NCBI GenBank assembly: GCA_029953675.1
Contig: JAMWBK010000008.1
Coordinates: forward strand, 1,240,001-1,304,000
Source: Rhodosorus marinus CCMP1338
Taxonomy: Eukaryota > Plantae > Rhodophyta
Reading direction: 5' to 3'
DNA length: 64,000 nucleotides
This document shows positions 10,563 through 49,428 of the stretch, piece after piece (within the stretch, counting starts at the first letter, position 1; each line of letters opens with the position of its first letter). The notes under the pieces are model-generated. The model saw nothing but the letters and a program-made list of their open reading frames with translations, was not told the origin of the DNA and did no database searches. The translations under genes and the position numbers were made by a program.

Positions 10563-10566
10563 GAAT

Positions 10567-10638: not shown

Positions 10639-10646
10639 TAAGTTTT

Positions 10647-23894: not shown

Positions 23895-26238
23895 GGGACG
23901 ATCGCTGCGGGGACAGCTGTCCTTGCCCCAGCGGTCAACTCGACCCGAGCTCCTGGGGCCGATTCCTCGGTATCTGGCCCTGTGCCCCATGTTGCTCCTT
24001 CTCGCCCCGCGCGTCCTTCCTATTCCCAAGTCCTCCGGCGTGGGACTGTTGAGGCCCGAGCGGAGGCCTTGGTAAGTGCTTTCCCGCCTGAGCCTGCAGT
24101 TGATTCTGTTCAGCCCACACTCTCTCCTCTGCGTTGGGTCTTAATGACCAATGTGCAACCCCAGCGCTCCTCGCGCTCCGGGGCCCGCATTCCTGTTCGC
24201 GATTTTCGAGACACCATGGCCTAGTGCCTGGGCACGTCCCCTCGCGATTTTCTCTACGTTGATTTTTCGGGCCCTCACACTCGCTTCCTGGTCTCCGATA
24301 CCGCTTATCAAATCCTCTCTACGCTGTTGAAAACGCCTCCCTCACAACGGCCGGTTTTAGCGAATAAGATTCTGACTCGCGCCCACGTGTCCCTCGTGCT
24401 TGATTTTGACCGTTTTTCCTCTGACTCGCTTGCGCCTGCGGATCTCCTTGGCGCGCCCGAGGACCTTCTGCGATCCGCGATTTCGGCGCATTTTGAGCTT
24501 TCCCGCGTTCAGAAGAACCTTCTCGACCGGCTTCCAACTCGGGGCCTTCTCCACTCCGCTGTCCATGAATTCCTTGTCTCTGAAACTTCGCTTTTGGAGA
24601 ACCATCCTGATTTTGCTGAGGTGTTCCCAGTGGGGGGTCTCTCTGCGTGCGTAGAGCCTCTGGCTGTGGTTGAGCCTTCTGCCATGGATTTTGCTGGCGG
24701 GGATTCGGAGGTGTATCCGCTCGCCCTCGAACCTAGTATCCCCTCGCCATTTGGCGTTCGGGGTCGTGTTTCCGCGGTTCTGGAGGACGCGTAAGCGTCC
24801 TTGACTTCTTTGCGTGGTCCTCCGCCCAAGCGTCCTCATTTGACGCAAGTGGCGGGGGCGCCTTCCTCAGCTTCCCCTACGGATTCACATCCAGTCCACG
24901 TTTCCTCAGAGGTGAGGGAGCAGGATGCCTGAGTCCTTCCGGGATCACTGCGAGCTCCCTGCTTTTTTTCCCAGCTCCAGTAGCTTTGAGGCCTGGCGTT
25001 CTCGCCTTTTCTCTTGGTTCTCGGGGTTTGTTGCTGGTTTTCCCTCTGGGGAAATCCCCCTTTGCTCTCAATCTCCTCCGGCTTGCCTTGCTCATCGGCT
25101 GCGCCGGCGCGTGTCTTTTCTCTTGGACTTTTTACTGATGGAGGTGGCCGACCACCCTCAGGATGCACTTGCTTGGCAACTCCTGTTTCTTTTTCCTCGG
25201 CTAGTGCTCAGTGTCTCCCAGGGGCGCCAATCCTGTCCCATTAGACGTGAAGTCCAGTCTTTCCTCGCAGGGGACTTTGCTTTCCTGGAATCTTTGTACC
25301 TTGCTAGTGTGTCTACTTCCTCTTTGTGTTCGACTTCGCCTCCTCGTTCTCGTCGACAGGCTAGGGCAAAGGCAGCAGTGGCACAGGGGGATATTTGGCG
25401 GGGGGCGGCCATTCTCCAGCAACGCGTTTCAGTCTAGCGGTGTCGAACTGAACTTGGCTGACACAGTTGCCGCATTGTTTCCTGCGCACGACGTGAGTTG
25501 GAACCCTGTTTTCCAGCGTGTCTTAGATCCTCATGTCGCCTCCACGACTGACGCGGGCAGGTTGCTGGTTCGGCCTGAAGAGGTTTTGGCTCTTCTTGGG
25601 TCCGCCCCGAAGGGTCGTGAACCGGGTCCCCCAGGTCTCCGGGTTGAGCTTTTGCACTGGTTGGGCGAGGAGGGCCTCGACGCCCTTGCGCGAGTGGTGG
25701 AGGCTCTTGTAAATGGGGACGATTTTTGCGACGATGCATGAACCTTACTTTTGCGGTCGCACCTGGTGCTAGTGCCTAAGCCTGGGCATTCGCGCCAGAC
25801 GCCCTCCACGCCCCATCGGGATGTGCGAGACCCTGCGCAAGTTGGCGAGCCGTTTTCTGTCTCGCAGGCTCACTAATGAGGCACGGGGTTTCTTCGGCCT
25901 GACCCAGGTGGGTGTGGGCTATTCGGGCGGCTGTGAACTGGTGACTCGCATCATGCAGTTGGACAGCCTCGGGGAGGAGCCTTTCGGTACACTTTCGGTC
26001 GATTTTGCGAACGCCTTTAACAGCGTGTCGCGTGTTCACGGGCTCGAGGTGGTTCGTCAGCTCTTCCCGTCGGGTTTCCGTTTCTTGCGCCGGGTTCTAG
26101 AAGGGCCAACTTGCCCTCTCCTTGTCACCTTGGGTGCAGACAGCCAGAGCTTTGTGTCACAGACGGGTGTTCAGCAGGGAGACCCCTTAGGGCCTCTTCT
26201 GCACGCATGTGGATTGCAGTTGGCGCTGTTGCGCGTGC
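23895..26238 (+). mobile_element. Lineage C copy 2, 5' region and RT (interrupted at about 26239)
   Basis: Collinear with about 7020-9330: RPSYSQVLRRG, LSRVQKNLLDRLP, VDFANAFNSVSR, GVQQGDPLGP. Confidence 0.88.
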
Positions 26239-26239
26239 C

Positions 26240-26741
26240 ATGATGTTTGTATAAAATGTCCTGCTTTCTACGAAATCCCTGCTCCCCGTATTTTACTGCT
26301 TCCGGGTATACTGCTGCGAAATCAGGATCTTGTAGATATGCTCCGGTCCAATCTTCTTGGGGTAATATACCGGAGACCGCCAGCTGGTTGATCGCTCCTC
26401 GGCTGAGAGGGTCTACGATATTTTCTGCTCCCTTCTTGTATTCGATATCAAAAGTAAACGGCAGGAGTCTATTGACATATCTTGCCTGTATATCTTGCCT
26501 GTATGTCAATAGACTCCTGCCGTTTACTTTGGATATCGAATACAAGAAGGGAGCAGAAAATATCGTAGACCCTCTCAGCCGAGGAGCGATCAACCAGCTG
26601 GCGGTCTCCGGTATATTACCCCAAGAAGATTGGACCGGAGCATATCTGCAAGATCCTGATTTCGCAGCAGTCTACCCAGAAGCAGTAAAATACGCGGAGC
26701 AGGGATTTCGTAGAAAGCGGGACATTTTATACAAACATCAT
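26240..26741. repeat. Fold-back inverted duplication: 240-bp arms, 22-nt spacer
   Basis: 26240-26479 is the reverse complement of 26502-26741 with at least 6 mismatches. The spacer contains a short tandem duplication (tcttgcctg twice). Confidence 0.92.
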
Positions 26742-28429
26742 CGTGTTTGTGTGCCGCGGAAATTCGTACCGCACTTACTGCGAAAACACCATGATGAACC
26801 AACCGGAGGACATCTTGGGCTTCATAAAACGGTGAACCTGTTGAAGCGGCGATATTATTGGCGGACCTTACGAGATGACGTCCAGTCCCTGATACAGAAA
26901 TGTGAGACATGTCAGCGTCAGAAACCATTAAGGGCGGCTCAGGGGCTTTTACAACCTCTGCCAGTACCAGAATCAAAGCTACAGGATATCTCGATGGACT
27001 TTATTGTCAGTCTCCCGATGACGGAATCCGGACATGACGCAATCTTGGTAATCGTGGACCGATTCTCGAAGTACGCGAAGTTTATCGCGACCAGAACGGA
27101 TGCAGACGCCCGTATGACGGCAGAACTGTTTTTCGAACACTGGGTGCGTTTTGCAGGCTTACCGCGAACATTTGTCTCCGATCGCGATACGAAGTTTACC
27201 AGCCTATTCTGGAAACAATTAATGGGTAAGCTTAAGGTCAAGACTCACCTAAGTACGGCCTATCACCCGCAGACGGACGGACAAACAGAGCGGGTCAACC
27301 AAACCTTGGAGACTTACCTCCGGTGTAACAGTAGCCAAGCGTCATGGGACTCTGATCTTCCCAAGGCGGAGTTGGTCTACAACACGCAGATTTCGGAGTC
27401 TACTAAGTATTCGCCCTTCGAACTTCTGTACGGACGAAACCCTGAGCTACCGGGATCCTTAATAGTACCACGTGCAGAAGAAGCTACCCCTACGCCTTTA
27501 CCTGATGCAGCGGAAGTTCTTCTACAACATCAACACGACCAATACCTGGAGGCGCGGAACAACATGCTTTACGCTAAGCAAATCCAGAAGATGCGGTATG
27601 ATGCGAGGCGGCGAAACCCTGACTTTACCCCCGACGAGCTGGTATTATTATCGATCAGAAACCTGCCGTTGCAAGACTCTAAACCGTTTCGACCGCGTAC
27701 ATCGGCCCTTTTCGACCGCGGTACATCGGCCCTTTTCGCATCAAACGGAAGATAAATGATGCCGCCTATACGTTAACGTTGCCAGCAGGGATGAAGATAC
27801 ATCCAACGTTCCACGTTTCCCTGCCGAAGAAATTTAGGGGAAACCGCAACAACGTTCAACTGAACATACCCGATTTTGCAGCTGAAGTAACGGGAGGCGA
27901 AATCAAATCCGTACTTGGTCATCAGATGAAACCAGAGGGAACCAGCGAATATATGGTATACTTCGAGGGGGAAACAGTAGCTGATGCTCGATGGATTGCA
28001 GCTCACCAGTTGCCACAAACCTCTGCTACAAAAAGGCAAATTCGCTACTACATGAACTTTCATCGTGCTGCTGAATCTGCCCGACCCCGCGCTTCTTCTT
28101 CGGTGGGAGGGATGTGACGTCTCCACCTTCCAGCTATGTCCGGCTATGCAAAATTATGCTCGGGCTGTGCCAAAAACTCTGGAGGTGCAACACCCTTTTG
28201 AGCTTAATAGTTATTGCACATCCCGATGGAGCAAGAGTATAAGTACGATGGGCAAACTCGATATTTCCCAGGTTAGCTGGAGAGAAGAGAGACAAGATAG
28301 AGAAGAACAAGATAGAATTGGGATATATTTCCTAATTTGGGAGTAATTAGGGGGGAATAAAACTCGAAATATGGAATAATTTGAGTAATACCCAGCTGGC
28401 AGTTTGAGACGTAAAATCTGGTCCCATCG
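26502..28429 (+). mobile_element. Chromovirus (Ty3/gypsy) 3' fragment: RH end, integrase, GPY/F motif, chromodomain, PPT, LTR, PBS-like motif
   Basis: HHDEPTGGHLG..CETC, ISMDFIV, VSDRDTKF, GQTERVN, RYIGPF..IHPTFHVS, chromodomain-like EIKSVLGH..EYMVYFEG..ARWI. PPT ggtgggaggga at 28102-28112; LTR about 28113-28416. Confidence 0.9.
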
Positions 28430-29762
28430 CAGCATCAGTTCCCGCGGGTCCGCGTCGTCGCCTTCCATGACGACGTGACCCTTCTCGGTGCTCCTGATGA
28501 TCTGGTGCAGGCGTACTCCCTTCTGGGCGAGGGGGCGTCCTTGATAGGCTTACGCACGGCAAGCGTGACTTTTGGGGTGGCCCTCAGTGCGCTGCGGCCC
28601 AGGTTCCCTCTCTGTTCCGGGACATTTGGCGTCCCGAGGGCTTCATTCTATTCGGTGTCCCTGTGGGCACTGAGAGTTTCGTGGAGCGCAACCTTCGAGC
28701 GCTGGTGAGCCGCCACGCTGAGCTCTTGAATGAGCTGTGCCGCCTACCGGAGGGGTACCTCCAGACTGCTCTGCTCCTCCTTCAGGTTCAGTGCGTATCA
28801 ACGCCTGAACTATTTCCTGCGGCAGCTCCCTTCGACGTGGGGGGCTTGGCTAGCCCTTCGCGCTGATCAGCGTGCGAGGGACGTTTTGAGCGCACTGGTG
28901 GACGCAGACCTCTCTACTCTAGGGGAGAACGAACAGGCTGTCCTTCACCGCCAGCTGGCCTTGCCTGTGCGCATGGGCGGACTAGCCGCGGGGAATTAGG
29001 CAATAATCCAACCGGCGGCCGTGGTGAGCTCTTGGGCAAATGCTTTAACTACTTGGTCTAGGGAGAGCAATCCCGCCGTGCGTGGTTTGTTACGAGGTCT
29101 CCGCGAGGGGAATTTGGACGTGACTCTCAGGTCGAGGCTCGGAGGCGTTTTTGACGAGCTGGAGGGTGCGTTTCAGAAATGTAATGCCCTGCCAAGCCGT
29201 ACACAACCCCGCTACGGGTCGTGGCGGGCAGCTTTTGACTCTTTTGGCGGATCTCGTTTCGGAAGCCCTGCGGCCGAACCGTGTCTTGACAATGGAGCTC
29301 GGATGGGGACTGGCGTTAGCGCTGGAGACGATGCTGACATGGATGGTGTCGATGCTGAAACGGACGCTGTTGCCGTGCCGTCGAGGCCGCCTGAGGAGTC
29401 TGTTACCCGGTCGGGCCCGGCCCCTTCGAGAACTGATGTAGTACAAAAAACCCTTTCCTGGGACATACATCGCGACTCGTAAGCCACCCTTCCAGGTTCA
29501 GCTTCCTCTCCGCCTTCGACCTTGGCTCGCCTTCGTGCTTTGGGGGGTAGCCTCAGCTCTCGCTTCTTTACGGTCATTCCTGCCTACCTGCGGCTAATGA
29601 TGACAGACTTCGAGATGCGCACGAACTTACGTTTGTACCTTGGCTTGCCCCAACCGCCATGGCCCGCGGCTGGGGCCTCGAGTTGTAACCTGTGCGGTAG
29701 CCACGTGCCGTGCGGCGAATTCGGTGGACACCTGTTGGCGCTGCGGGGTGAGCTTCCGCGAG
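28429..29762 (+). mobile_element. Lineage C copy 2, continuation after the chromovirus insertion
   Basis: Resumes QHQFPRVRVVAFHDDVTLLG, then QLALPVRMGGL, SRTDVVQKTLSW, CNLCGSH; cut at about 29762. Confidence 0.85.
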
Positions 29763-32451
29763 GTGTATGGCATGTTCGCAGCCACCGCTGACCGAGATGC
29801 CGAGTTGTTCCGGGAGCAGAAAGTCGCGGAGAGGCGTGGCGACAGCGCGAAGTGTCCACTGGGTGACAGCCTTCCGTAGTACCTCAGGAATCCCTAGCGG
29901 GCGTAGACGAAGAGGGCGCCCTTGTCTAGCTTCGGCAGACGTTCGCTTGTCTTTCGCGAGGAGTCGGTTGCTGCGCATGGCTTCGAGAAACACGTCAGGG
30001 AAGCTCTCCAGAGTGGTGGCAAGCTTGCGAAGGAAGCGCACAAGTACCGGTTGCGTTGTCATGGTGAGATTTCGCAGATGTTCGGCTTTGAGCGCACTCG
30101 GCCCGGGGGCTGTGGCGTACGGTAGGTGTTCCAGCGTTGACAGGAGGCTCTCGTCAGAGGCCAAAGTCGGGTCCCATATCTTGCGTTCCGGTCCGTTCAG
30201 CTTTGCCTGTAGGGCGTCTTCAAGCTCCGAGGAGAATGTTGCGGCCTCGTATTCAGGGAAGAGCGTAGTCAGAACGCGCCAGGTGGCAGGAGTCTTCGAG
30301 GCGAGATCGGTGGCCAGTAGGAGTTGGCTAGACTGGGACAGACGTTGAGCTTTGGCGAGTTGTAGGGCTCGTTTCTGTCGGTGGCGTATCTGAGGCGGCG
30401 GAGGTGCGATACAGTTGGTGTCAAGGGTTTTTCTGTGAGCAGTAAGATGTTCCCACACCGTGGAGAACCTTCCGTTCATAACGGCGAGCATCTGCGCAGA
30501 AGGGGCCAGGTCGCCTGTGTGTCCAAGTGCGAGACTGGGGAGAGCAAAGATGAACAGGCGTGACAGGTTCGGCGCTGACGTATTAAGGGCAAGTTCCAGG
30601 GCTTTCGACATGAGATGGTTCCAGTGCGTTTTCAGGTTATCGGGGACGAATTGGCGAGTAGGCGTCGGAGCCTGAGTCAGCTGCCACCAGCGGTTGCCAT
30701 TGTCGGTTAAGTTGAGAGCGAAGTCGTGCAAAGACGAGAGCCAGGCGTTCGAGTCGGTCTCGAAGAGTGACTGCGTCGAGGTGGTAGGTCGTTGTCGACG
30801 AGCACGAGCACGGCGTGATGAGCGAGAGCGGTTCGGAGTATATCGTCTGAGGAGCTGCTCATGATTGAGTCGTCGAGAGGGAGTCAGGCGTGACGTCGTC
30901 GTCCTCGTTGGAAGGCTTAGGGCGCTTAGTGGGTTGAGCCACTTGTCCCTGGTATTGGGCCGTCGAAAGTCCTTGCATCGGCTCCGCAGGGGTCACTGGT
31001 TGATCGCTAGTGGTAGAGGGGTCAGGCTCCGAGTCTAGTCGATCACGGGCTGTCGCGGCAGGCGTCTCAGGCGTGTTGTCCTCCCGAGCGGCTGGGACTT
31101 GGGCAGAATCAGCGCTATGCGTAGTCTCTGCGAGGGGTTCCGCACTCTCCCTCTCCAGTGCCGGTGGTTGAGGATCAGCTACCGGGCGCGCTCCAGAGAG
31201 CGTGGTTCTCTTCGATCGGTTGTTGTCGAGTACTGTGGCAGGAGAAGGGCACGCGCAGGCAATTGTCGGGTGCTCGTTGAGCTTGTGCGTGGAGGCTGGC
31301 CAGAGTGCGATCGAGCTCGGCCCTGACGTGGCCCAGGAGTGCCTCCCTGTTGTTGGGTGGGAGACTCCTGCGATTTGTAACAATCCGCTGGATCCGTCGG
31401 TAGCGGAGCAGGTTGTGAATCAGTGCAACGCGGGGATAGTCTGCCGGTTGGTGACGGAGCTTTTCCCGCATGCTCAGGTATTCGTGTGAAGTTGGAGAGA
31501 GCTTGACAGCTTGGATACGTTGATCAGGAGGCAGGTGTCCTCCTGGTGGGTTCGAAGGCCCCAGCGTTGGTAGCGTCGCGGAGCAGTTGGAAGGCGGTAT
31601 GATGAGCGATGACGTGAACATGATGATCAAAGTAGTCCAGCTGGAGCAGGGAATTTTTCTGAAGGCCGGCAAGGCGCTCGATATCCCAAGCGCGATGGGC
31701 CTTGCTTCTGGTGGAGTCCCGAGGTCGAGCATTGAGTAGCACAAATGCGTCAACGTCCTTCTGGCTCTGGTACTGCAGTCCGTGAATGCTCGCGAAACAC
31801 GAGCGATTGGCGGCTGCCGGGGTCTGGTTGGCGCGGACACGTGTCGTCCAGCTCATTGGCTGAGGTTGAGCTCGAGTCCTCGTCCGTGCTTGCTCATTGG
31901 CCGTTGCTAGATCTGGGAATGCATTTGAATCGAGATCACGTGTGTCGGGAGATCGCGGGCGGGCTGCTGCAGTGGCGTAGTTTGCTGGTTCGTAGACAGG
32001 GAGGGGGCGCTGTGCCCTCGGGGCAGCTGGTTGTGGCGTCGTAGTCAGATTGTGAAGGAGTTGAGCCTCCGTGCCATTGGCGTGTGCCTGGGCTACGAGA
32101 CCCATAAACCGCAGCATAAGCCCATTGTAAAGCGGGGTCTTGAATGGGCGCGTCGAGATGTAGCTTCAGCGCTCCGCAGCTCAGGTCAATTGCCAAGGGA
32201 GTAGGTACGTCGTTGCCAACTGCAGATGCAGTTGTAGGCTCAGAAACAGGGACTGGCAGAGGCTCAGGTCCGTCTGCCCCCAGACTAACGGCCGGAAGGT
32301 CTTCCATTGTTGCGTCTGTGGAAAAGCCCCCCCCATCCGGAGGCACGGGCTCTAGGGTAGTCATATTACTCGAAAAGCGTTCGCGAAAAGAATCAAAGTG
32401 CAACTTTATCACCACGATAAACTCCAAAGTCCAAAAAGAGAAAAACCCCGG
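29763..32451 (-). mobile_element. Lineage A element E0: 5' end through RT start, 3'-truncated
   Basis: The 5' end abuts the repeat tract; TAPGPSALKAEHL, RPLGIPEVLRK, QLGISVSGGCEH. Confidence 0.85.
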
Positions 32452-32484
32452 AACCCCAGACTAGAACCCCAGACTAACGTAACC
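32452..32484 (-). repeat. Telomere-like repeat tract (C-rich on +)
   Basis: aaccccagactag aaccccagactaacgtaacc. Confidence 0.9.
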
Positions 32485-35400
32485 GTAAACTTTACTGGGC
32501 AGCTGCCTACTGCAGCGTATCACTAGTGCTACTACTATCTAGGGAAAAGCTTACGCTATCCCCGCTACCGGGGTCTCATGCTACGTTCGAAAGAAAAAAC
32601 AGGGACCAGTGGATTCGCCAACTGGTCCACTCGGAGAGCGCCTATCGCGATCTCCGCGTTCCCCTGCCATAATTTCCTGTTGATTTGAGCCCGAACATCG
32701 CTCAGGTTCTAGGCACCGGTGCAGCAAATGTTTGCAGCTATCTCGTAGAAATTCTTGGGCCATTTGTCCTGTACGCCCAAAGCTCTCGATCGCAATGGGA
32801 ATGAACATGTCTTCTGGCTTCTCCACTGACATAGCCTCTTTGTAATGCGCGAGTTTCCACCTCTTCGCTCTTTTCGCTGCATAGCCGTTCTCTGACCCAC
32901 TCCGGTTCACGTATTTCTCCTGCAGTGGCGATGTAACGGTCACATCCAGTGCATACCTTTAGAACGTCCTGGGATGAGTGGCAATATATCCGGTCTTAGT
33001 CGGTAGTTCTCGAAGTGCCCCTCCGGTTCTTGCTTAATGTCGATGAAATTCCATCGATTCAGCCATCGCGCCAGCTGTGTACAGATTTCGTCCTGCCTTC
33101 GCTGCCGTAGTCCCGTCGACGTTGGGCAGTGGTGAAACCTTTGTACACCGTTAGTACCATGACTACTACCACAACTAGTACACTTTCCCGACGTCTGTAT
33201 TCCCGGTATCGGCAAGCCCAACAGCTGTCGTACATTCACTTGCAGTTCTGCTGTGCTCAGTTTTTTCGGCGCGAGCGTCGGCATTTCCCGTAGCCACACT
33301 CCTGATCCAGCTCCGGCTGCGCACCTAATTCTGGCCCGATCTTCAGCCGAGATTTGCCCGTGGGATTTACCAGTCCTTGGAAAGCTGCGGGGTGTGCCTC
33401 TCTGGAAAGGGTTTGTTGAATGGAACCATGCTTCCATGCTGGGGGGTCGGCTTGTTCTGCTCCTGGGGCGGTTTCGGTTCTCGGCTTCAGAGTGGCCAAG
33501 CTCTTGATTCGCTCTGGGGTCTCTGGGCGCAGTCTGCGTTGTGTTGCTGCTGCTGCAGGCGCGCGGATTTGGTCAGCAAGCTGTGCTGTCGACCTTTGGA
33601 TTCTCCTCAGTGTGTGGTTGTCTGCAGGTGCCTCTGAAGATGATTGCTCTTGTACCTCGGTGAGATATGGCCATTCCCCGTTATTACCTTTGAAAGTTTC
33701 GCACCAGGCCGAGTAGAAGGCGATGGGCTGGATCCGTTGTCTCGTAGCGAATCCCAGTCCTCCCCATCGACAGGGGAGTGCGATCTGGGCTAGTGTAGAG
33801 TTTTGGTGGTCAGGGTCCTCGGTGTCCGCAGTAGTGAGGCCTCCAAATAGCGTATCGAGGTGATCACGCGTCAGGGCGTCCGCTTCCCGTGCAAGTGTTC
33901 TTCCAAAGGGGTAGGCGAGGCAGCGTAGAAAGTAGTCTAGGCGGGGTTCAGAACAATACCGGAAGAGTGCCAGTTTCGTATTCAGTTCCTCAGGGGGCAG
34001 GTGAATTATATCCTTGAATAGTTTCTCGTGGCTGTTTTGTATCTTCCGGCACTCGCTTTGGATGTAAGCGCGTGTTCCAATCGGGATGGAATGGATGGTA
34101 ACTCCGTCTCGCGTCGCCGTGACGCCAGGGATGTCATGGCTGAGCAGTCGTGCCGTACAAGGTGCACTTGGCAAGCTGCAGTCGGGCTCCGAGTGAGGGA
34201 AGTAGTGCCTGACCCCAGTGTAGTGAATCTTTCAGTAGTTGCAGCGGCCCTACGATGGTGATATCGTCGTGGATCGCCACAATGGTTAAATTAGGGGCTT
34301 TGTTGTGCAATGCTTCCAAGAAAGGCGTCAGGGAGAGCGCATGTAGGATTGGCCCTAGGGGATCTCCCTGTTGAACTCCCGTCGTGGCCCGAAGCGTCAA
34401 GCGATGGGTGTCGTCTTGGTCCGGCCGACGAGTGTAGGAGCGTCCGTGCTGTCATTTCCGTAGCCAAGCCGGTACACGGCTTCCAGCTCGGGGAAATGGT
34501 GGTCCAGGATTTGCTTTGCGATGCGGCGGTCGATGCGGTTGAACGCATTCTCCAGGTCGAGCCGTAAGACCACGGCGTCAGGTTCACACGAGATATGGGC
34601 CTGGATCGCGTGTAGTGATCGTTCACATCCACCGCTAACTCCGATGCCTAGTTGTAGAGGTGTGAGCAGTTCGCTAACGCGGTCGGTAACCGATCGAAGG
34701 ATCCACTGTGTGGCCACCTTTCGAGGACTTCGGGGACTCCAATCGGCCGGATGCCAGGTCCCGTTGGAGCGGTTGTGTTGCTCGTGGGTTTTTCGAACGG
34801 CAGTAATCTGCTGCTGCGCATTGCCCAGGTCATCGGGGGGTGCAAACTTTTCTGGTGCGTAGCTAGTTGCCGGAGAACGCGGATTAGAGCCACTTGGACG
34901 TCCTGAGTGGCCCCCTGCAGGTGTTCTGCTCGGAGTCCACTAGGTCCGGGGCTGGTACCTTGGGGAAACCGGGCTATTATCGCGAGAATACCTTCATCTG
35001 CTGCTTGTCGAGCATTCCATCTTCTCCTGAGATTATCGGTGTCCTTGGATAGCAGGAGTTGTAGGGCTTGGTCGACCTCCTCCGGTAGGGAACACTCCGT
35101 CGGGTCCGGAAAGAGTTCCTCCAATTGGTGCCACGTAGCGTTGGTAAATGGAGCCAGTTCGGTGGCCTGTAATCGTCGGGCCGCGTGTGAAAGGCGTCCG
35201 AGATGTGCCAATTTCAGGGCCTGTTCTCGGCGCTTTTGCGCCGTTTCTGAGCTATCTCAGGTCCGCTTAGTGCCGTGCGAGGTGTCTGGTTGGAGGCATA
35301 TTCCTCCAGAGCAGTCCAGACTGTGTGAAACTCGCCTTCGAGTACGTGCGTGACCTGCGTGCCGATTTGAAGAGCAGTATACCCTAGGACCAATCCTGGG

Positions 35401-37232
35401 AGCCCGGAGAGGAAGAGGCTGGCATTCACTGGTGCGCTGCGGTCCATTGAGAGCTCCAGGGCGACCCGAAGGAGGCTGCTCCAGGCGTTGACGTGTGCAC
35501 GACGCACGAAGCTCCGAGTAGGGGCGGGGCAGTGTGCGAGACGAGTCCACAACCTACCTCTGTCCGTGATATCTTTGACGAAGACATTCCAGCGCTCAAT
35601 CCAGTCCTGTCGCTTGGAGAAGAAAAGAGGCTCTTCCTGTCTCGTTTGATTCCCCTACGTCGGCTCGTTATTATTTTCGGTTGTCTTCCTGACTGGTCTG
35701 GATATCCATCGCATTATCGTGGGCTTCGGAGGGGGTCTGGGCATCGTTATCGCGCTGAGGTGCTTCTGGGGCTGCGAGAGTCAATCTCGGTGTCATGGCA
35801 TGTGCCTGCTGCTGTCACGCGTGTGCGCTTCTGTTGGGGAGGCTCCGGAAGGTTGTGCGGGAGCTCGGCGTGTGGATTTTCCTCTTCGGCATCCATCTGT
35901 GGTAGTTGAGACGTGGCGCTGGAGTCACCCGAAGCGTCAACGGTCCCGCGGGCTGCCTGTGCGGCTCCGTGAGGAGCCGAGGCTTCTGGGGCTGCGTGTG
36001 TAGCTGCTGCAGTCTCAAGGGGTTCCACACTCTCCCCGGCGACCGCTGGTGGATGTTGTAGGCCTTGTAACGCTCGTAGACGCTCTTCCAGCGTTTCATG
36101 GACGGATGCGAGAGTAGAGAACGACAAAGAGCAAAGGATGGCCCCTGAGGATATCCCGTTGTAGCCCAACAGGTTGTCAGCCTCCAGTCCCTGTCCTGTT
36201 TGGAGGATCACTTGCCGTTCAGGATGTCTCAGTGTGAACGATCCAAAGATCCCTGTTCTGAAAACGCCTCGAGCGATAGCGCTCTGCACAATCGGGATTG
36301 CATCCGGATGTCAGAGCAAACTTGCGTGTGATGATGAAGTCCACATGCGCGATGTGAGAGGCTGGGATTCCCAGCGCGCGGCAGAGGACGGTGGTGAAGT
36401 CCGAAGGTGCCACATCATCCTGCCTTGGAGGGCGGACGTTTCGGAGGGTGGCAAGGATCGGTTTGGTCTCTGGTCCTCAGGTTGCTCCCTCCACCGTAGC
36501 GTGCAGCTGTCTCAGGGTAGCTTGCTGGGTCTGCGGCCCTGGGCGTCCTACTGTGCGGGTTTGTGCTGCTTCTCCGCGCACTGAGGCTTTCTGAGCCGTG
36601 CGCTCATCGTAGGTAGGTTGTGCACTGCCATTCCCGATGACTGGGAAGGCCTCTGCGTAGTCCACTGGGACCGTGACACCTGTCCTCAGCGGAAGTTGAT
36701 TGAGACGCGTTCCGGCTGCATGTTGATTGATGGCCGCCGCCGGCGGGTGCTGTTGCAGGATTTTGGAAGGGTCTGGCGCTGCGGCTCCACCGTGGCACAT
36801 ATAAGGTTTTGCTGAAAACTCGGAGAGACGTGCGGTAATTCCTTCGAGTTCAATGGTGCTGTTAATCCGTGAGTACAGTTTGAATACAGCCTGGTAGAAG
36901 TCCGCGACAACTGCTTCACCAATTCCCAAGTCCTGATAGCATCGGTCGGAGGCGCGAAGTTGGTGCAAAATGGCTGTCGCAGGTCCAGTTGCCTCTTGAG
37001 TCTCCATCCTGTAAGCCTCCTGTGTGTTCGCTGCTTCGAAATCCTGTGTGCTTGTTGTCCTGCCGCTCGGTTCTGGCCTCCGACTCCCATTCGGTGTCGC
37101 CATCCCCTCTTCGCCTGGGCCAGGGCCGTTGGTGCCCGGGTGGCGGAGAGGTGCTGGGTCCTGTCCCAGCGTCTCCTTCTCGATCATAAAGCTTTCCTTA
37201 ATAAAACCTCACCGTATATTTGTGCTTGTTCT
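32485..37232 (-). mobile_element. Lineage A element E1: apparently full length (~4.75 kb), multiply frameshifted
   Basis: ATG at 37187 after a ~45-nt 5' UTR. RT motifs LDLENAFNRIDR, TGVQQGDPLGP, AIHDDITIV; knuckle CTSC..FHHCP; RLE motifs LRPDI..DVTVTSP..FIPIAIESFG. Flanked on both sides by the 16-bp repeat. Confidence 0.92.
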
Positions 37233-37295
37233 CAGACTAACGTAACCACCCCCCAGACTAACGTAACCCCAGACTAACCCCAGACTAACGTAACC
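37233..37295 (-). repeat. Telomere-like repeat tract, about 4 units with variants
   Basis: cagactaacgtaa ccacccccc agactaacgtaa cccc agactaa cccc agactaacgtaa cc. Confidence 0.92.
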
Positions 37296-38807
37296 GTAAA
37301 CTTTACTGGGCAGCTGCCTACTGCAGCGCAACACTACGTCTAACCTATCTAGGGAGAAACTTACTGGAACCCCGCTACCGGAGTCTCATGCTACGTTCAA
37401 AAGAAAAAACAGGCACCAGCGGATTCTCCAACTGGTCCACGCGCAAAGCGCCTAGTGCTATCTCTGCATTACCTCGCCATAGTTGCCGGTTCATCTGCGA
37501 TCTCACATCTCTCAGCTCCTCACTCCTGTGCAGTAAGTGTTTGCAGCTGCGCGGAGGAACTCTTGCGCCATTTGCCCCGTACGCCCAAACGTCTCTATCG
37601 CTATCGGGATGAACTTGTCATCCGGTCTCTCGATCACCATCGCTTCCTTGTAGTGAGCGATTTTCACTTCTCCGCAGCTCTCGCCGCGTATCCGCCGCAA
37701 ATATTTTCCCTGTAATGGTGACACCACAGTCACATCCAGCGGATACCTTTGTTTGGTCCTGGGATGCCTAGCCACGATATCAGGTCGCAGTCCGTAGTTC
37801 TCGAAGTACCCCTCAGGTTCTTGCTCTACGTCCATGAAGTTCCATCGCCTCAGCTACCGTGCCAACTCTCTGCAGATTTCGTCGTGCCTACGTGCCATAG
37901 TCCAGTTGATGTTGGGCAGTGATGAAACCGTTGTACCCCAGTCCTTCCGTGTTTACTCCGGCAACTAGTGCACTTCTCGGTGGTCCGCAATCCCGGAATT
38001 GGCAGCCCCAGCAGTTGTCGAACGTTTACCTGCATCTCAACCGCACTCAATTTTTTCGGTGTCATCGTTGGTATTTGACGCAGCCAGACTCCCGATCCGG
38101 ATCCCGCGGCGGACCGTATTCGAGCTCGGTTTTCAGGGGAGATTCGTGGGTTGGTGACCAAGCTTTGGAATGCAAAGTGGTGTGCCTCTCTCGAAGGTTT
38201 GTTGTATTGAACCATTATTCCAAGCTGCAGTCTCGCCCGGTGCGCTTCGAAGAGATGTTTCTCGCGGTTGTTGCAGGGTAGTCAGTGCCAAGATCCGGGG
38301 CGGGGTTTCTGGTCCGAGCTTCCGTTGTATTGCTCGCGACGATGCACAGATCTGGTCCGCCAGCTGTGCAGTCGACCATCGTTGCTCCGTCGGCTCGTAT
38401 GTATCTGGTGAGCGTTCTGCCGAAACCTCCCGCTCTAGTTCAGTCAGGTATGGCCATTCATCTTCATTGTTCCGGAAGATGTTTCTCCATGACGAGTAAA
38501 ACGCGATGGGTTGGACGCGCTTTCGAGTAGCGAAACCCAACCCCCAGCGGCAGGGCAGAGCGATTTGGTCCGAGATCAGCCTGCGTACTCGTCGTCCTCT
38601 ACAGCTGTCGTAGCGAGGCCTCCGAATAGAATTTCCAGATGATATCGGGTCATCATATCGGCCTCGCGCGCCAGAGTTCTTCCAAACTCGTATGCGAGGC
38701 ATATTAGAACATAGTCTAGAGTTCTTCCAAACTCGTACGCGAGGCATCGTAGAACATAGTCTAGAGTTCTTCCAAACTCGTACGCGAGGCATCGTAGAAC
38801 ATAGTCT
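37296..38807 (-). mobile_element. Lineage A element E2: 5'-truncated (~1.5 kb)
   Basis: Starts at LDYVLRCLAYEFGRT; contains CTSC..FHHCP, LRPDIVARHP, FIPIAIETFG and the conserved 3' UTR. Confidence 0.9.
38673..38807 (-). repeat. 45-bp unit triplicated at the 5' junction of E2
   Basis: Units at 38673-38717, 38718-38762 and 38763-38807, each encoding LDYVL(R/I)CLAYEFGRT. Confidence 0.92.
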
Positions 38808-38827
38808 AACCCCAGACTAACGTAACC
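38806..38827 (-). repeat. Telomere-like repeat
   Basis: ctaaccccagactaacgtaacc. Confidence 0.9.
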
Positions 38828-41800
38828 GTAAGCTTTACTGGGCAGCTGCCTACTGCAGCGTAACACTACTTCTATCGCTATCTAGGGGAATACTTACTCG
38901 AACCCCGCTACCGGGGTCTCATGCTACGTTCTAAAGAAAAAACAGGCACCAGTGGATTCTCCAACTGGTCCACGCGGAAAGCGCCTAGCGCTATCTCCGC
39001 ATTACCTCGCCAAAGTTGCCGGTTTATCTGCGATCTTAGATCGCTCAGTTCTAGGCTCCGGTGCAACAAATGCTTGCAGCTGTCCCGCAGAAACTCCTGT
39101 GCCATCGGTCCAGTCCGCCCAAACGTTTCTATTGCAATTGGGATGAACTTGTCATCCGGGTGTTCTATCGTCATCGCCTCCTTGTAGTGTGCTTTCTTCC
39201 ACCTCTCTGCACATCTTGCTGCATATCCACTCTCCGCTTCACTACGCCTCAGATACTTCCCTGCAACGGAGACACAACCGTCACGTCCAGGGCATACCGT
39301 TGAAATGTCCTCGGATGCGTAGCAATGATGTCTGGCCGTAGCCCGTAATTTTCAAAGTAATTATCTGGCTCCTGCTCGATGTCCACAAAGTTCCACCTGT
39401 TCAGCCACCTTGCGATCTCCATGCATATCTCGTCATGCCTACGTTGCCACAGGCCAGTCGACGTGGGGCAATGATGAAAGCGTTGTACTCCGTTTGCACC
39501 GTGTTTACCACGGCATCGAGTACACTTTTCCGTAGTCCGCCCCGGAATCGGTAGCCCCAGTAGTTGTCGGAGATTCACCTGTATTTCGATCGAGCTCAGC
39601 TTTTTCGGCTCCAACGTCGGCAGTTCGCGCAGCCAGACTCCCGATCCGGAGCCCGCCGCGGACCTGATTCGAGCGCGATGTTCGCCCGGAGATGCGCGGA
39701 TTGTTAACCAGGCGTTGGAATGCTGAATGGTGTGCCTCCCGAGAGAGAGTTTGTTGTGTAGAACCATTATTCCAATCGCCACAGTCTTCTGGGGCGTCTC
39801 CTGGGGGGTTTTCCCTCGTCTGCTGCAGGGTGGCCAGTCTTCTGATCCGCGGCGGAGTTTCGGGGCGCAGCCTGCGTTGTATCGCTCGAGCAGATGATTT
39901 TTTCTGGTCTGCAAGGTGTTCTGTGGACCATTGTAGTCGTGTCACGGTGTTAGTAGCCAGAGTTCTGTCTGTATAGCCTGCCTCTGCCTCTCAGCGATGT
40001 AAGGCCAGTCGCCGGTATTGCTTCGAAAGGTATTTGTCCAAGCCGAGTAGTAAGCGATAGGTTGGATACGCTGTCGAGTAGCGAACCCCAATCCCCCCCA
40101 CCGGCAAGGCGGCGCAATCTGTTCCCAGATGTGTCCCAGGTGCTCATCGTCCTCCATGCCAGAGGTAGCGAGGCCTCCGGGCAAGGTTTCCAGATTATAT
40201 CTCGGCATGGCATCCGCCTCCCGTGCCAGACTGCGGCCGAACGGGTAGGCTAGGCATCGTAGCAGGTAATCTAGGCGCGTTTCAGCGCAGTACCTGAACA
40301 ATGCGACCTGTGCGCTAAGTTCATGTTGCGGTAGCTGTGCAACATGAACGTGCACTTGGCCTCCAGGAACGGGCGATCGGTGATTTGGTGCTCAGTTTCG
40401 TTGCAGCTCGCAACGGCAAACTGCAGGGGCGCACTTTCCTCTGATTCCTCATACGCGAGGATGAGTATTGGCATCAGCTCCGGGAAGCAGGCTTCAGCTA
40501 CCAGTGCCGCCACTCTCCTGTCGATCCGGTTGAACGCGTTCTCCAAGTCGAGTTTCAGCATCGCGTGTTGAGGTTCGTAGTATAAGTGGGCTTGAACGGC
40601 GTGTAGGGCTTGTTCACATCCGCTACGAACAGATATTCCCAGTTGCTATGGAGTAAGAAACGTGCTCAGTCTGTTGGAAACCCCGCGAAGCACCCCCCAC
40701 TGGGCTGCCAACTTTCGTAAAACTTCTGGAACCGCGATCGGGCGAACACGAACTCGTCGAGAGACTTCGATTTCAGAGGCGTCTTCCTTGTCGGGCTTCA
40801 TGAAGGGCAGCAGTCGGCTGCTACTCAGGGCTTGCCGCAGTGTACGTGGAAATATTTCAGGGTTCTTCACGAGACGGCGCAGGAACCGTACCAGCAGAGG
40901 CCTATTCGTTGGAGTCACTGCCTGTAGATGCTCGGCGCGAAGGGCACTTGGCCCAGAACCCGTTTTTGACGGGTGTTTATTGATCAGTGTGAGGAGTGAT
41001 TCGTCGCTCGCGTCAGACGGGTTCCTTTTGCGGGGAGGGTGCTCCCTAGCTTCGTCGAGAATTCGATTCATTTCTTTCGCAACATCCGGATGTAACGGTT
41101 CCATCGAGGCCTCTGGAAATAGCTCACGCAGAGCATTCCACGTGGACGACGTCTGCGGTGCGAGCTCCGTGGCCTCCATGCGCTGTGCAGCTGCAGAGAG
41201 CCGTCCAGAATGGGCCAGCTTCACAACCTGTCTGTTTTTCCACGTTTCTCTCTGGTTATCAGCTCTCCTCTCACGAGGAGAGGGCTGACTGGTGGCCGGC
41301 ACATTTAACGCCTTCCATACAAGTGAGAATTCACCCTCCAACAGATGCCCCATTTGTTCCCCGATCTGAAGATCACAGATCCCTAGCGCCAGGTCAGGTA
41401 GTGCCATGATGAAGAGGCGTAAAAGCGGAGCAGCTGCAGTGTTCAATGCGAGACCTAGAGCACGGTTGAGTAGTAGGTTCCAATGCTTGACCTGGGCATT
41501 AGGTACGTGTTCACGGGTCCGTACAGGGCTATGTGTGACCATCCACCAGCGGCGGCCGTCGTCCGTCTGTGCAACTAGGAACATGTGAAGCCTTTGTTCC
41601 CAAGCCTCCGGATCCGTGGTGATCAGCGCGGTGTCTCGCAGCCGCTTTCTCGAGCCTGGGACGCTCATGATTGGGCGTTTTCGGGTGCAGATGGGGTATC
41701 CCCCTGTCTCGGCTTCTTCAGAGATCGTGTTTCGTCGGTGGTGGGGGTATCTTCGTCACTTCCATACTGCTCGGCTGGACCTCTGAGCTGCCGGTACCCA

Positions 41801-43233
41801 AAGTTTCAGAGGGCACAATATCTGGCGGTATTTCGCTTTGTGCATTGTTCGGTGTGACTTCAGGAATCGGTGCACTTTCGTTATCGGGTCCTGTCTGCAG
41901 CGGGATCTCAATCTCTCCTACCGTAATAGCGGAGGCCATGCGGTGGGCTTCGGGTTCCTGCGACTCAAGGCGCGAGCGCAGATACTCTATACGAGCATCC
42001 AGGTGTGCATGGATGGAAGCCGAGGTAGTGAACGGCATCGACCGCAGGGAAACCAGGCGCTTAACTCTCTGCATCTGTTCAATGGCTCGTTCAAGTGTGC
42101 GTTGGCTAACTTCATGTGCCTGCAGTGTGAGCCTCTCATTGTACGCAATCAGGTTCCGCGCTTCTCGCTCGACTCCGGTGTGAATGTTTACCTGGTGATC
42201 TTGCAGGCGTCTCGCGAAGGATCCAAACACACCTGAGCGGAACACACCCCTCGCAATGGCGCTGGTGATCAACGGTATCGCGCTGGGTGGCATACCAGCA
42301 GTGCGTGGGTGGCGACAAAGTCGATATGTGCAATCAGGTGTACCGGGACACCCAACTCTGTGCACAGGACTTGTTTGTAATCCCAGAGCGCCACCAATTC
42401 GTTGCGCGGCGGGCGTACGTTGCGCAACGTCGCGAGCACCGGGTGTGTATCGGGGCCCCATCTACTTCCTCCAACCGTGGCATGCAGTTGTCTGAGGGCT
42501 GTCTGCTGACGCATCCCGGCGGCTTTGGCCGCACGCTGTGCGTACGTGCCACTGTGAGGGGTATGTCCCAAGGCGGGGAATGCTAGATCCTGCTGTCCCA
42601 CCCCAGACTGTCCCACCCCAGACTGTCCCACCCCAGACTGTCCCAAACTCCGCTGTCCCAGTTGCTGTTGTCCCATGGCGTGCAACTCTCGGTGTCCCAC
42701 CCCACATTCCTCTGTTGACTGATCCGTGGATTGAGCCCAAGTTGATAGGGCATCTTCTGGTTCTGTCCACGGCGGGGGTGAGCTCCTTGCGGCACTTTCG
42801 AGGGGTTCCACACTGTGGGGTTTGCACCCAAACGCTCCAGATGATCATTAATCCCCTTCAGGTCAGCCGTTGTGCCTGCTCTGGTGTACAACCGGTCGAG
42901 ATAACGAAAAAACGCTGCATCTCTGCGACTGCCACCCCAACATCTTCGTAAAGGCGGTGTACTTCGAGAACTTCTGCATGAAGTCCTGTAGAAAGTTCTC
43001 GTCTGAAACCGTTGACGCAGTGTCCATTGTATCCGCTGGAGTATCACCATTGGTAACCTGATGTACATACTGCACCGGGTTTTCTTCGATTTCACCCTCC
43101 TCAAGCTGATCAGCGCGACAGGCTTTGTCTCCCCGAGGGGCCCTCTCATCACTCAAGATTCCCTCCCCAGCCGGGAGGGGTTCTCCCACGTTGGTCATCA
43201 CTCTCAAATAACCACTTCTTGTGTGACCAGATA
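38828..43233 (-). mobile_element. Lineage A element E3: both ends present, RT core internally deleted (~4.4 kb)
   Basis: ATG near 43197; GSGPSALRAEHL, RPIAVPEVLRK, LDLENAFNRIDR. No QGDP/HDD segment is visible before QLPQHELSAQVALFRYC. RLE and 3' UTR are present. Confidence 0.88.
42593..42675 (-). repeat. 15-bp in-frame tandem repeat (GQSGV) inside E3
   Basis: ccccagactgtccca x3 plus degenerate copies. Confidence 0.85.
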
Positions 43234-43255
43234 CCCCAGACTAACGTAACCCCAG
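43234..43255 (-). repeat. Telomere-like repeat
   Basis: ccccagactaacgtaaccccag. Confidence 0.9.
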
Positions 43256-44094
43256 GCACTTTCAGGCGTTTGAGGAATTGGTGGAGAACCCGGGGATTAG
43301 TGAGACGGTACATGCGCATCTCCGTTCCTGCACCGGACCAGGAGGGGGCACCTGGCTGCGAGAATTCCACTCGAGACACCCGCGCGGTCTGAACACTGAC
43401 GAATTGAACTGCTGGGATTGCCGCGGCCGAGAGTACTTACTTAGTACATGAACTATATGCTGGCACGCCATGACCCTGCAGGCCTCGCCTCTGCACCAGC
43501 TCTACAGGGAGCTCGACCTGCGACACAACATGGTTCGGGATGCTCTTGCTGCACAACTCAGATAATGGACACTGGATGTGACGCTGGAGCCTAATGGACA
43601 CTAACCATGCACCCAGCTTCGACCGGACATTTCACCACGCCATCCTCCGACCGGGAGGCTGTACGTGATCGACGTAAAATTGAACTCGCGGCTGCAAAGA
43701 CCTACCTACACAAAGCGTCCATACAGGCCGAGAAGTTTAAGGAGTCCAAATACCGGGATGCGATCGGAGCTCAGAATGACGACACTTTCGTGCCCTTCTG
43801 CGTGGAGACGTTCGGTGGGATGGATAAGCAAGCTGATGAATTCTTGAAAGAGGTGACTCTGCACTTGCAGCACCCATCGACACAAGTCAGCGAAGCACGG
43901 GCGACACTCAACCAGTGTTTATGGAACGGGAATGCACTACGGCGAGGCGCGCAGAATTGACGAAGGGAACTATGAGATCATCCCTGTAGTAGAACGTAGC
44001 CACACAACCTGTTAGGGGTTTTTAAACGCATAGATAGACTCCTTATTTCCTCTTGACGGGCTCCAACAAGGAGTCCTTTAGTAAAACGTTGACA
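43256..44094 (+). mobile_element. Lineage B 5'-truncated element, inverted relative to the array
   Basis: AFEELVENPGISETVHAHLRS..GGTWLREF, LRHNMVRD, FVPFCVETFG. The 3' UTR matches 10440-10542 and is followed by gttacg. Confidence 0.85.
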
Positions 44095-44100
44095 GTTACG

Positions 44101-44600
44101 GATTCGAGCTCTGTGTTCGGGGTCGTCTAGGCGATCCGTGACCAGCCGGGTGAAAGCAGTTTGGTAAGCCTCTCAGAGAGGGTTTCTTGGATTGAACCAT
44201 GCTTCACCACGGGCTGGTCAGGGGTGTGTTGTTTGGCAGGGGCGGTTGTCAGGTGTGTAGGGCATCCGAGTCTGTGGATGCGGGGGGAAGTTTCCGGGGT
44301 CATTCTCCTCTCCTCTTGATCGCAGCACTCGAGGCTGTAATTTGTTTTTGTGAGTAGCCGGTAGAGCGTTGAAGGTCCGAGGAACGGTTGGTGGGGTACG
44401 TAGCAAGCCCAGGCGGCGATGGCGCGATTCGGCGAGCATGATGCTATGCTATCGCCAGAGAGCGACTGTCTCAGACTCAGGTTCACTTCGTCCGTGTTGG
44501 TATCTCGATGAGAAGTCTCGCACCCAATTGCCGCCTCCAGACCCGGGTCATGAACGGAGACGCGCTCGTACCGTCTCACTAATCGCCGGGTTCTCCACCA
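44101..44600 (-). mobile_element. Rearranged fragment: B-like segment followed by A-like segment
   Basis: Begins ggtggagaacccggcgattagtgagacggtac (inverted copy of about 43281) and ends in KHGSIQETLS..DPEHRARI, similar to 10647-10737. Confidence 0.75.
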
Positions 44601-44620
44601 CCCCGGACTAACGTAACCCC
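44601..44620 (-). repeat. Telomere-like repeat marking the right boundary of the retroelement field
   Basis: ccccggactaacgtaacccc (one mismatch to consensus). Confidence 0.85.
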
Positions 44621-45325: not shown

Positions 45326-46795
45326 TTATTTTAACTGTACTTCCTGCGTCTGTCTCAAGAAAAGTTTGACTATCCACATTAGTAGGAAAATGGCCAGTAC
45401 CCCTCCGATAACAATTCCAACCACAGTACCAGCACTTAGAGGTGGTTTGTCCCTAGCGCTTTCCTCGTTTCCTACTTCGTTTCCGAGCTCAGGAACTTGT
45501 ACATCCGAAACACTGGCGTTGTAGTAAACAACTGGGATAGATACAAGAGGGGACTCCAGCGTTCGGTATAGGACCACAGCGTGTGAAGAATACATGTCAA
45601 CCGCGTTACAGAAAACGCGAACGTCAGTAACCTCCCGGGCGGGGGGACGGAAAGCCGTTTTGCCCTCCCATGTGCCGTCAGGTAAACGGACAAGCGTCCC
45701 GGCACTAGCAAACGGCAGAATCTGCTCGCAGAACGTAACCCTTCCGTCGCTAATCTGAATCAGTTGGTGATTCTTTTCGCGGTCTCTGATCTTTGCAGGA
45801 ATGGAATAGTAAAATTCCTTTGTACCCAAGACAAAGCTCTCTTCAGCCCACGCGCTTGAGCCACGCTCGTCAGTTTCCCAAACGAAAAGCGAAGCCGAGA
45901 GTCGATTGTCACAGTTCTTGCACGCCACGAGTACTTGACTTCTGATTTCATCAAATGACACAATGGGTTTCTCAACAACGGTTGTCGACCACTGAGCCCT
46001 ATCATAACCATGGTGAACGAAAACCCGGTTGACAGCCCACATGCCCTCCTCACTTAATCTCAACAAAAACGCTCGTGAGCATCCCTCGCCTTCGAGCGCA
46101 AGGACAGCTGTTCTTTCGCCAAGTTGAACATCTCCAAAACTCTTTCCGCGTGCAGAGTAGTCCGGCGACACTGTATACGTCCGCTTGCTATCTTCGCAAG
46201 GTAGAACCCTTAATCTCCTGCTGGTGACATCGAATTGCTGGAAGTCCAGCCAGGTATCTTCGGAGAGCTTGAAAATGAAAACTGATTTCGTCGATGAAAT
46301 CATCACGAATTCCCCGTGAATCGAAACAGACTTACCGAAGTCTTCACTAGTCCGCGAAAAAACCCCATGTAGATTCCATAATCCATTTTGGCGCTTGAAA
46401 AGAGAGACTCGACCGCACGTGCGACAATTGCAATCTACAGACGATATTGTCATCCATCCACTCGTGTTATCGGCGCTTATTGCTTTGCCGAAGCTGCAGT
46501 CTTTGCCTTTTATGGTTTGAACGAGCTCCCAGTTCTCAGATCCCTTCGAAGGCTCCCCTCGGTACGAGAAAACTTTCCCATCGACTTTCGTGTCTGGAAC
46601 TCCCAGAAACAAGGACTGGACTATCAGATCACCATCGAAATGAACTTTTGATGTGAACTCAACTTGCGAATGGATGTCCAGCGGAAGTATGATCCCGTGC
46701 TCTCGCCATTCTACGCTATTTCCAGTCCAGTTATCTACGCCACGTGCTCCATAAACACGTGCGTAGAGCGCAAGCAGCAGCAGTACACAAACCAT
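45326..46795 (-). CDS. Type I membrane protein with FG-GAP-like beta-propeller repeats
   Basis: Signal peptide; FGKAISAD, FGKSVSIHG and FGDVQLG motifs preceded by G.V..(F/Y) strands; TM helix GTVVGIVIGGVLAIFLLMWIV; short cytosolic tail. Confidence 0.75.
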   Translation of the reverse strand: MVCVLLLLALYARVYGARGVDNWTGNSVEWREHGIILPLDIHSQVEFTSKVHFDGDLIVQSLFLGVPDTKVDGKVFSYRGEPSKGSENWELVQTIKGKDCSFGKAISADNTSGWMTISSVDCNCRTCGRVSLFKRQNGLWNLHGVFSRTSEDFGKSVSIHGEFVMISSTKSVFIFKLSEDTWLDFQQFDVTSRRLRVLPCEDSKRTYTVSPDYSARGKSFGDVQLGERTAVLALEGEGCSRAFLLRLSEEGMWAVNRVFVHHGYDRAQWSTTVVEKPIVSFDEIRSQVLVACKNCDNRLSASLFVWETDERGSSAWAEESFVLGTKEFYYSIPAKIRDREKNHQLIQISDGRVTFCEQILPFASAGTLVRLPDGTWEGKTAFRPPAREVTDVRVFCNAVDMYSSHAVVLYRTLESPLVSIPVVYYNASVSDVQVPELGNEVGNEESARDKPPLSAGTVVGIVIGGVLAIFLLMWIVKLFLRQTQEVQLK

Positions 46796-49415: not shown

Positions 49416-49428
49416 TTAGTCTGGGGTT
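49416..49428 (+). repeat. Partial telomere-like motif upstream of the RWP-RK gene
   Basis: ttagtctggggtt (13-nt exact match to the repeat). Confidence 0.5.

Follow-up and report, generated by a model that had tools for sequence, protein, structure and literature searches.

Decayed retrotransposons probably targeted to a 16-bp repeat in the red alga Rhodosorus marinus

What kind of sequence would accumulate, copy behind copy and in a single orientation, at a 16-bp motif lying deep inside a red algal contig? The question is raised by positions 29763–44620 of a 64-kb stretch of DNA (hereafter the window) from contig JAMWBK010000008.1 of Rhodosorus marinus CCMP1338 (GCA_029953675.1), in which window coordinate x corresponds to record position 1,240,000 + x. 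A preliminary description made from the sequence alone had read this interval as a head-to-tail array of retrotransposons in an alga, and the host is indeed an alga, the red alga R. marinus. We find that the region is very probably a nest of dead, site-specific retrotransposons without long terminal repeats (non-LTR retrotransposons), belonging to the type with a restriction-like endonuclease (RLE; R2/CRE-like), gathered at the motif TTACGTTAGTCTGGGG. All junction and copy counts given below refer to this one 64-kb window of one genome.

The array, its motif and its 3' junctions

With up to two mismatches allowed, TTACGTTAGTCTGGGG has 13 matches in the window against 0.01 expected, a number that none of 100 shuffles reached, and its 12-nt core occurs 28 times against 4 expected. 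Within 29763–44620 every motif match lies on the minus strand, and the claim that a 16-bp repeat separates the head-to-tail copies was borne out, 1–4 units standing between neighbours. Read along the minus strand, the interval comprises the following features, in which RT denotes reverse transcriptase, EN endonuclease and UTR untranslated region, and E and F are two lineages of elements with 30–38% amino-acid identity to one another:

44601–44616, minus strand: boundary unit TTACGTTAGTCCGGGG (one mismatch), preceded by GGGG and host-like DNA, with no element 3' end
43250–44600, mixed strands: composite rearranged segment
from 44600, minus strand: first part of the composite, an element 5' region
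44099–44183: second part, an inverted E-type piece
43257–44095, plus strand: third part, an F-lineage EN/3' UTR fragment, its 3' end followed by TTACGG, a broken plus-strand unit
43279–43380 and 44499–44600: inverted repeats of ~100 bp at the ends of the composite
43234–43255, minus strand: full unit (43234–43249) and a preceding partial unit, CTGGGG
38826–43233, minus strand: E-type element of 4.4 kb with N-terminal region, RT, knuckle and RLE, decayed
38810–38825, minus strand: single perfect unit
37294–38809, minus strand: E-type copy of 1.5 kb, 5'-truncated (thumb through EN to 3' UTR)
37230–37293, minus strand: unit block of 16 nt, 11 nt (TTAGTCTGGGG), 16 nt, GGTGG and 16 nt (TTACGTTAGTCTGAGA, two changes)
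32483–37229, minus strand: E-type element of 4.75 kb, RT core ~34137–35127, knuckle and RLE ~32722–33374
32440–32482, minus strand: perfect unit (32467–32482), then degenerate 13- and 8-nt units (TTCTAGTCTGGGG, TTCCGGGG)
29763–32466, minus strand: 3'-truncated element of 2.7 kb, N-terminal region and first RT motifs

Four same-strand elements and a terminal fragment had been proposed for this interval. The four minus-strand copies stand (4.4, 1.5, 4.75 and 2.7 kb), whereas the supposed fragment at 43250–44600 turned out to be a composite that includes a plus-strand piece. The 4.75-kb copy is decayed, at least five frame changes being needed to read from RT to EN, and a self-comparison showed the 1.5 kb upstream of three of the unit blocks (in minus-strand reading) to be homologous, at 70–74% identity.

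Beyond the interval the same motif and elements recur on the plus strand (motif at 10545 and 16670–16717), and further motif copies stand by themselves:

6987–10544, plus strand: F-lineage copy 1, mapped at the protein level, with a perfect unit directly after it
10545–10560, plus strand: that unit, followed by tRNA-Glu(CTC) at 10566–10639
10647–11960, plus strand: E-type copy of 1.3 kb, 5'-truncated, with an intact 3' end and no unit after it
16611–16667, plus strand: F-lineage EN fragment, 3'-truncated inside the endonuclease domain
16670–16717, plus strand: three units after the truncated EN fragment
16718–20354, plus strand: element sequence, then cut by a Ty3/gypsy pol gene
23893–29760, plus strand: F-lineage copy 2, 3'-truncated at the knuckle and split by an LTR-retrotransposon integrase piece (26247–27755)
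49417–49428, 53836–53853 and 57238–57255, plus strand: weaker lone motif copies, intergenic
59205–59222, plus strand: lone perfect unit followed by TT, intergenic, with no attached element

A common 3' junction is found in at least two lineages, in which ...TAC(AC)GG is followed immediately by TTACGTTAGTCTGGGG. Five of the six intact 3' ends continue into TTACG..., at the identical position in both lineages, one of the five being the broken junction at ~44095. Upstream of the junction the copies conserve a 5-bp hairpin, whose stem is GCTGC...GCAGC in E but GCTCC...GGAGC in F, a difference of one compensatory pair; after it both lineages have CAGTAAAGTNTAC(AC)GG and then the unit. In each of the window's seven junction blocks the G-rich strand of the motif is also the sense strand of the element, in agreement with the orientation first noted; that several diverged lineages have one target was likewise upheld, E and F having the same precise 3' junction in spite of their low identity.

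The lone copies have the core TAGTCTGGGGTT and dissimilar flanks, with only (TTACG)TTAGTCTGGGGTT common to them, and they lie upstream of host genes on the minus strand (RWP-RK, patatin, Rxt3 and CCR4-like), ~240–600 bp from the start codons. They could represent a promoter or telo-box-like element, or else unoccupied target sites. A derivation of the motif from part of a tRNA (variable loop and T arm) was ruled out, as there are no tRNA features at the lone sites. Scans of metagenomes, prokaryotic genomes and viruses gave 0 matches to the motif, and it was not found in the literature under any of six rotations or strands.

Two other tandem repeats were noted within array members. The 4.4-kb element contains an internal 15-bp repeat in 3.5 copies (42593–42645; CAGTCTGGGGTGGGA on the element strand), which has 10 bases in common with the target unit and is reminiscent of the variant telomere-like repeats at the 5' ends of the MoTeR elements of Magnaporthe. 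At the 5' end of the 1.5-kb copy a 45-bp repeat in three copies (38673–38808) encodes LDYVLRCLAYEFGRT three times over, a triplicated piece of the RT thumb.

Encoded proteins and classification

Pfam searches with the ten longest open reading frames (ORFs) of the interval returned no match, owing to the frame-shifted state of the copies. When a translation of the 4.75-kb copy was stitched from six pieces, RVT_1 scored 31.5 bits against a Pfam cut-off of 29.6. The best matches among solved structures (PDB) were to R2 and to ORF2 of long interspersed nuclear element 1 (LINE-1); the R2 match was weak (E = 7.6e-7), and its alignment covered the RT core and, separately, the CCHC knuckle and PD..D region (R2 residues 940–1035). 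An alignment with nine homologues retained the motifs CxxC..HxxxC, RHN, E, RPD, DVxV, K and F-P-x-x-E-x-G. The RVT_1 match, the R2 alignment and the nine homologues thereby confirm the RT, Cys/His knuckle and PD..D endonuclease that had been read from the sequence. In the N-terminal part of the Rhodosorus elements neither a zinc finger nor a Myb domain was detected, the N-terminal regions had no detectable homologues, and a query with the F lineage matched no Rhodosorus protein. The Rhodosorus family is transcribed, a transcript from the Marine Microbial Eukaryote Transcriptome Sequencing Project (MMETSP) being 63% identical.

All of the features examined for membership of the RLE grade (R2, CRE, NeSL and R4) were found, namely a non-LTR RT, a C-terminal CCHC motif with PD...(D/E)xK, and sequence-specific insertion. 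The 3' ends also conform to this grade: there are no LTRs, and the 5'-truncated copies of 1.5 and 1.3 kb end like the copies of 4.4–4.75 kb. Insertion into spliced-leader (SL) RNA genes, a classical feature of CRE elements, was not seen here, the target being the 16-bp repeat, and Rfam identified no SL RNA or other family at the junctions. The source data of the R. marinus genome paper, a RepeatMasker table, list LINE/CRE-SLACS as 4,036 copies, 2.82 Mb, 9.04% of the genome and 24 families, two of which, rnd-1_family-0 and rnd-1_family-1, are at ~1% divergence (PMC10250338). The published LINE/CRE label and the RLE domains agree with the earlier designation of the elements as CRE-like; as to the clade itself, the placement derives solely from that automatic label, and we treat membership of the CRE clade as putative.

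Several relatives outside Rhodosorus deserve mention in their own right. One from Pyropia vietnamensis (BAAFKR010000030.1, 386766–411162; 31–34% identical) consists of near-identical head-to-tail units of 7.1–8.1 kb located 17–41 kb from a contig end, one unit being without ~0.9 kb that includes the endonuclease region. The closest full-length relative from outside Rhodosorus, P0004, is a protein of 1209 residues with N-terminal C2H2-like motifs, encoded on a Logan contig from SRR29932441 (L003); ahead of it, the contig opens with a (TTTTCAC)n run (positions 1–30), which may be a different target of microsatellite type. Telomere-like flanks of note were not found in the relatives L002, L003 and L005.

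Insertion at the motif and competing explanations

How, then, might such an array be built? The element protein would bind its own RNA at the conserved 3' end, which consists of the 5-bp hairpin and CAGTAAAGTNTAC(AC)GG, and would recognise the 16-bp TTACGTTAGTCTGGGG. It would nick the C-rich strand where one unit meets the next, after the G run and before TTACG, and reverse transcription would be primed from the nick (target-primed reverse transcription, TPRT); with nicking and priming on the C-rich strand, the sense strand of the element would come to be the G-rich one, and a whole unit would remain past the 3' end. The terminal RNA bases, UUACGG, mimic UUACGU at the start of the unit and may base-pair with the strand that was nicked. 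Copies of the motif would then flank each new insertion on both sides and serve as the next targets for the same or other lineages, which would produce head-to-tail stacking with 1–4 units between neighbours; later insertions would also give 5'-truncated members and nested LTR elements. In this scheme we infer the nick position, the RNA–target pairing and the order of insertion.

Central to this explanation is that the motif is a pre-existing target and not the tail of the element, a conclusion drawn from four observations: the outermost unit, at 44601, is preceded by host-like DNA; lone units exist, perfect at 59205 and weaker at 49417, 53836 and 57238; three units (16670–16717) stand after a copy that breaks off within its coding region; and a relative from a Joint Genome Institute (JGI) sample, 46% identical, has a homologous 3' end followed by unrelated sequence in place of the motif. 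Several points weigh against the explanation as a whole. The intact 3' end at 11960 is without the motif, no pair of empty and filled sites was seen in the window, and a target-site duplication is unreadable because the target is itself repetitive. Every copy in the window is decayed, and activity and cleavage specificity are deduced purely from the junctions. The CRE label comes from an automatic classifier (RepeatClassifier) in another group's supplement, and the basis of the entire reading is a single window from a single genome.

One alternative is that the 16-mer belongs to the element itself, as a short 3' tail in tandem units that each insertion copies along, in which case the arrays would reflect something besides target choice. 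Elements of the CR1 type carry 8-bp tails, and a tail would account for there never being more than 1–4 units, for the constant register of the units after 3' ends, and even for the lone units, which could be tail-only insertions with extreme 5' truncation. We nevertheless think a tail unlikely: no element 3' end lies upstream of the outermost unit at 44601 or of the lone units, three units follow a copy truncated within its endonuclease domain, the intact 3' end at 11960 has no unit, and the relative with a homologous 3' end has no such tail; moreover, even a tail would have to receive the next insertion for copies to stack head to tail, and that is target specificity in all but name. The array might instead have arisen from one insertion by tandem duplication or unequal recombination, without repeated targeted insertion, as head-to-tail copies with short identical spacers might suggest. 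Neighbours come from different sub-lineages, are only 70–74% identical over their common 1.5 kb and measure 4.4, 1.5, 4.75 and 2.7 kb, which makes that origin highly improbable; their low identity and unequal lengths argue that neighbouring copies are separate insertions and not duplications.

A further proposal takes up the telomere-repeat specificity inferred in the preliminary description, and refines targeted insertion into the motif without excluding it: the 16-mer would be the telomere repeat made by telomerase, the elements would be specific for telomere repeats, and internal arrays would be relics of former chromosome ends or insertions into interstitial telomere-like units. This is quite possible, if somewhat short of an even chance. 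One strand of the motif is G-rich, with TTAG at the core of each unit and GGGG at its end; the units differ in length (16, 13, 11 and 8 nt) yet keep the G run in phase, and one of the shorter ones, TTAGTCTGGGG, resembles known derived telomere units. The 3'-truncated copy capped by three units is what end healing would leave, and the meeting of the plus- and minus-strand blocks at their 3' ends, each inner copy being truncated, is also in keeping with former ends. Telomere motifs are diverse among red algae. As in the telomere-specific elements MoTeR, FoTeR, Cnl1, SART and TRAS, orientation to the repeat strand is fixed and stacked copies have short tracts (1–4 units) between them: MoTeR, FoTeR and Cnl1 of the CRE clade are telomeric and arrayed with short repeat tracts between copies, internal MoTeR relics carry a short telomere tract, and SART1 has the same G-strand orientation and inserts within repeats. 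On the other side of the balance is the position of the array, ~1.27 Mb into the 2,117,290-bp contig, which at 1.27 Mb and 0.83 Mb from the two contig ends is not at a chromosome end. In addition, no run exceeds about four units, ordinary intergenic DNA upstream of genes harbours lone units on the strand opposite to those genes, host-like genes intervene between element sites, the orientation is opposite to that of the fungal telomeric elements of the CRE clade, and no literature source gives the telomere sequence of R. marinus. The genome paper reports 13 large contigs, 12 of them with at least one telomere; its text neither states the telomere sequence nor discusses retrotransposons (PMC10250338). 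The most specific form of the proposal, in which TTACGTTAGTCTGGGG is an unusually long 16-nt telomere unit, the CRE-like families (9% of the genome) are telomere-specific RLE elements with a SART-like orientation, and the internal arrays are fossil ends, we hold more tentatively still.

Comparison with characterized systems shows a mosaic of likenesses. Like the Rhodosorus elements, MoTeR1 (Magnaporthe), FoTeR (Fusarium) and Cnl1 (Cryptococcus) combine an RT with a C-terminal restriction-like endonuclease, have a fixed orientation to a short repeat, form head-to-tail arrays with few units between members, some of them truncated, leave internal relics with a short repeat tract, and have tandem repeats at their 5' ends. 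However, in MoTeR and FoTeR it is the C-rich strand that follows the 3' end, and the 5' end faces the chromosome end, whereas in Rhodosorus the G-rich strand follows the 3' end; the Rhodosorus elements differ further from MoTeR, FoTeR and Cnl1 in their red-algal host, their internal array and their 16-nt target of putative telomeric nature. SART1 of Bombyx mori resembles them in that its sense strand coincides with the G-rich strand (TTAGG) and in that it inserts within repeat tracts rather than at the extreme end. For telomere-like bases in the SART1 3' UTR, pairing with the nicked strand has been proposed, and the TTACGG of the Rhodosorus elements, compared with TTACGT of the unit, recalls them; SART1 is unlike them in its apurinic/apyrimidinic endonuclease (APE)-type enzyme, poly(A) tail, two ORFs and different clade. 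We know of no description of an RLE combined with SART-like targeting of the telomeric G strand. R2, which gave one of the best matches among solved structures, is likewise site-specific, uses TPRT and undergoes 5' truncation, but its target is 28S rDNA. CRE1, CRE2, SLACS and CZAR have a restriction-like endonuclease and strict site specificity, and theirs is the clade of the published LINE/CRE label, but they target the spliced-leader gene.

Novelty of the family and the rest of the window

The preliminary description knew of no earlier account of this system. The class label and the abundance of the family (9.04% of the genome, 24 families) are in fact already in published source data, so that its existence and abundance are public; what has gone undescribed is its target, the structure of its junctions and arrays, and the diversity of its lineages. 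A single 16-bp motif is recognised by several lineages that have diverged deeply from one another, and the CRE-like families account for ~9% of a small algal genome. Site-specific RLE retrotransposons are studied as tools for targeted DNA insertion, and each new pair of target and enzyme is useful for such work. If the motif is telomeric, it would add a new, long telomere unit to those of red algae, the elements would be the first telomere-targeting ones in that group, and CRE-like machinery in an orientation opposite to that of its fungal relatives would bear on the evolution of telomere targeting. If it is not, a dispersed 16-bp motif upstream of genes that attracts retrotransposons merits an explanation.

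The remaining features of the window are as follows:

3493–5612, plus strand: host-like ORF for a secreted Cys-rich protein, with a signal peptide and a 258-bp tandem repeat in 2.1 copies (5063–5592, 98% identical)
13216–13896: host-like ORF for a secreted Cys-rich protein
20219–23598, minus strand: open Ty3/gypsy pol ORF of 803 residues (protease, RT, RNase H, integrase)
26247–27755, plus strand: separate Ty3/gypsy integrase piece
45326–46795: intact host ORF, with a single match among public sequences, on the R. marinus contig itself

No LTR pair was detected within the window to accompany the two Ty3/gypsy pieces. The ORF at 3493–5612 has no Pfam match and is not recorded as an annotated gene. 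It and the ORF at 13216–13896 interrupt the element-rich left half of the window, which is thus no unbroken element desert, and they weaken the idea, which we had considered, that this half is a single gene desert or fusion scar. Near 29.7 kb (~29480–29760) the plus-strand block runs into the minus-strand block with their 3' ends facing; both inner copies are truncated there, and no unit stands between them. An inversion could have produced such a convergence, and so could a junction between two eroded arrays; that the convergence marks an old end-to-end fusion of chromosomes seems very doubtful.

Three smaller observations concern other parts of the window. The APE-type ORF at 57465–58601 was considered as a second element on the opposite strand and rejected, since it reads as a CCR4/nocturnin-like host gene. 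The tRNA-Glu(CTC) gene, with a TTTT run downstream, lies 5 bp past the unit that follows F-lineage copy 1 and 7 bp ahead of the 5'-truncated E-type copy. A short plus-strand ORF at 14596–14892 contains CP..RRH..E..ADL..VDLAV and, judged by eye, looks like a very diverged fragment of a restriction-like endonuclease.

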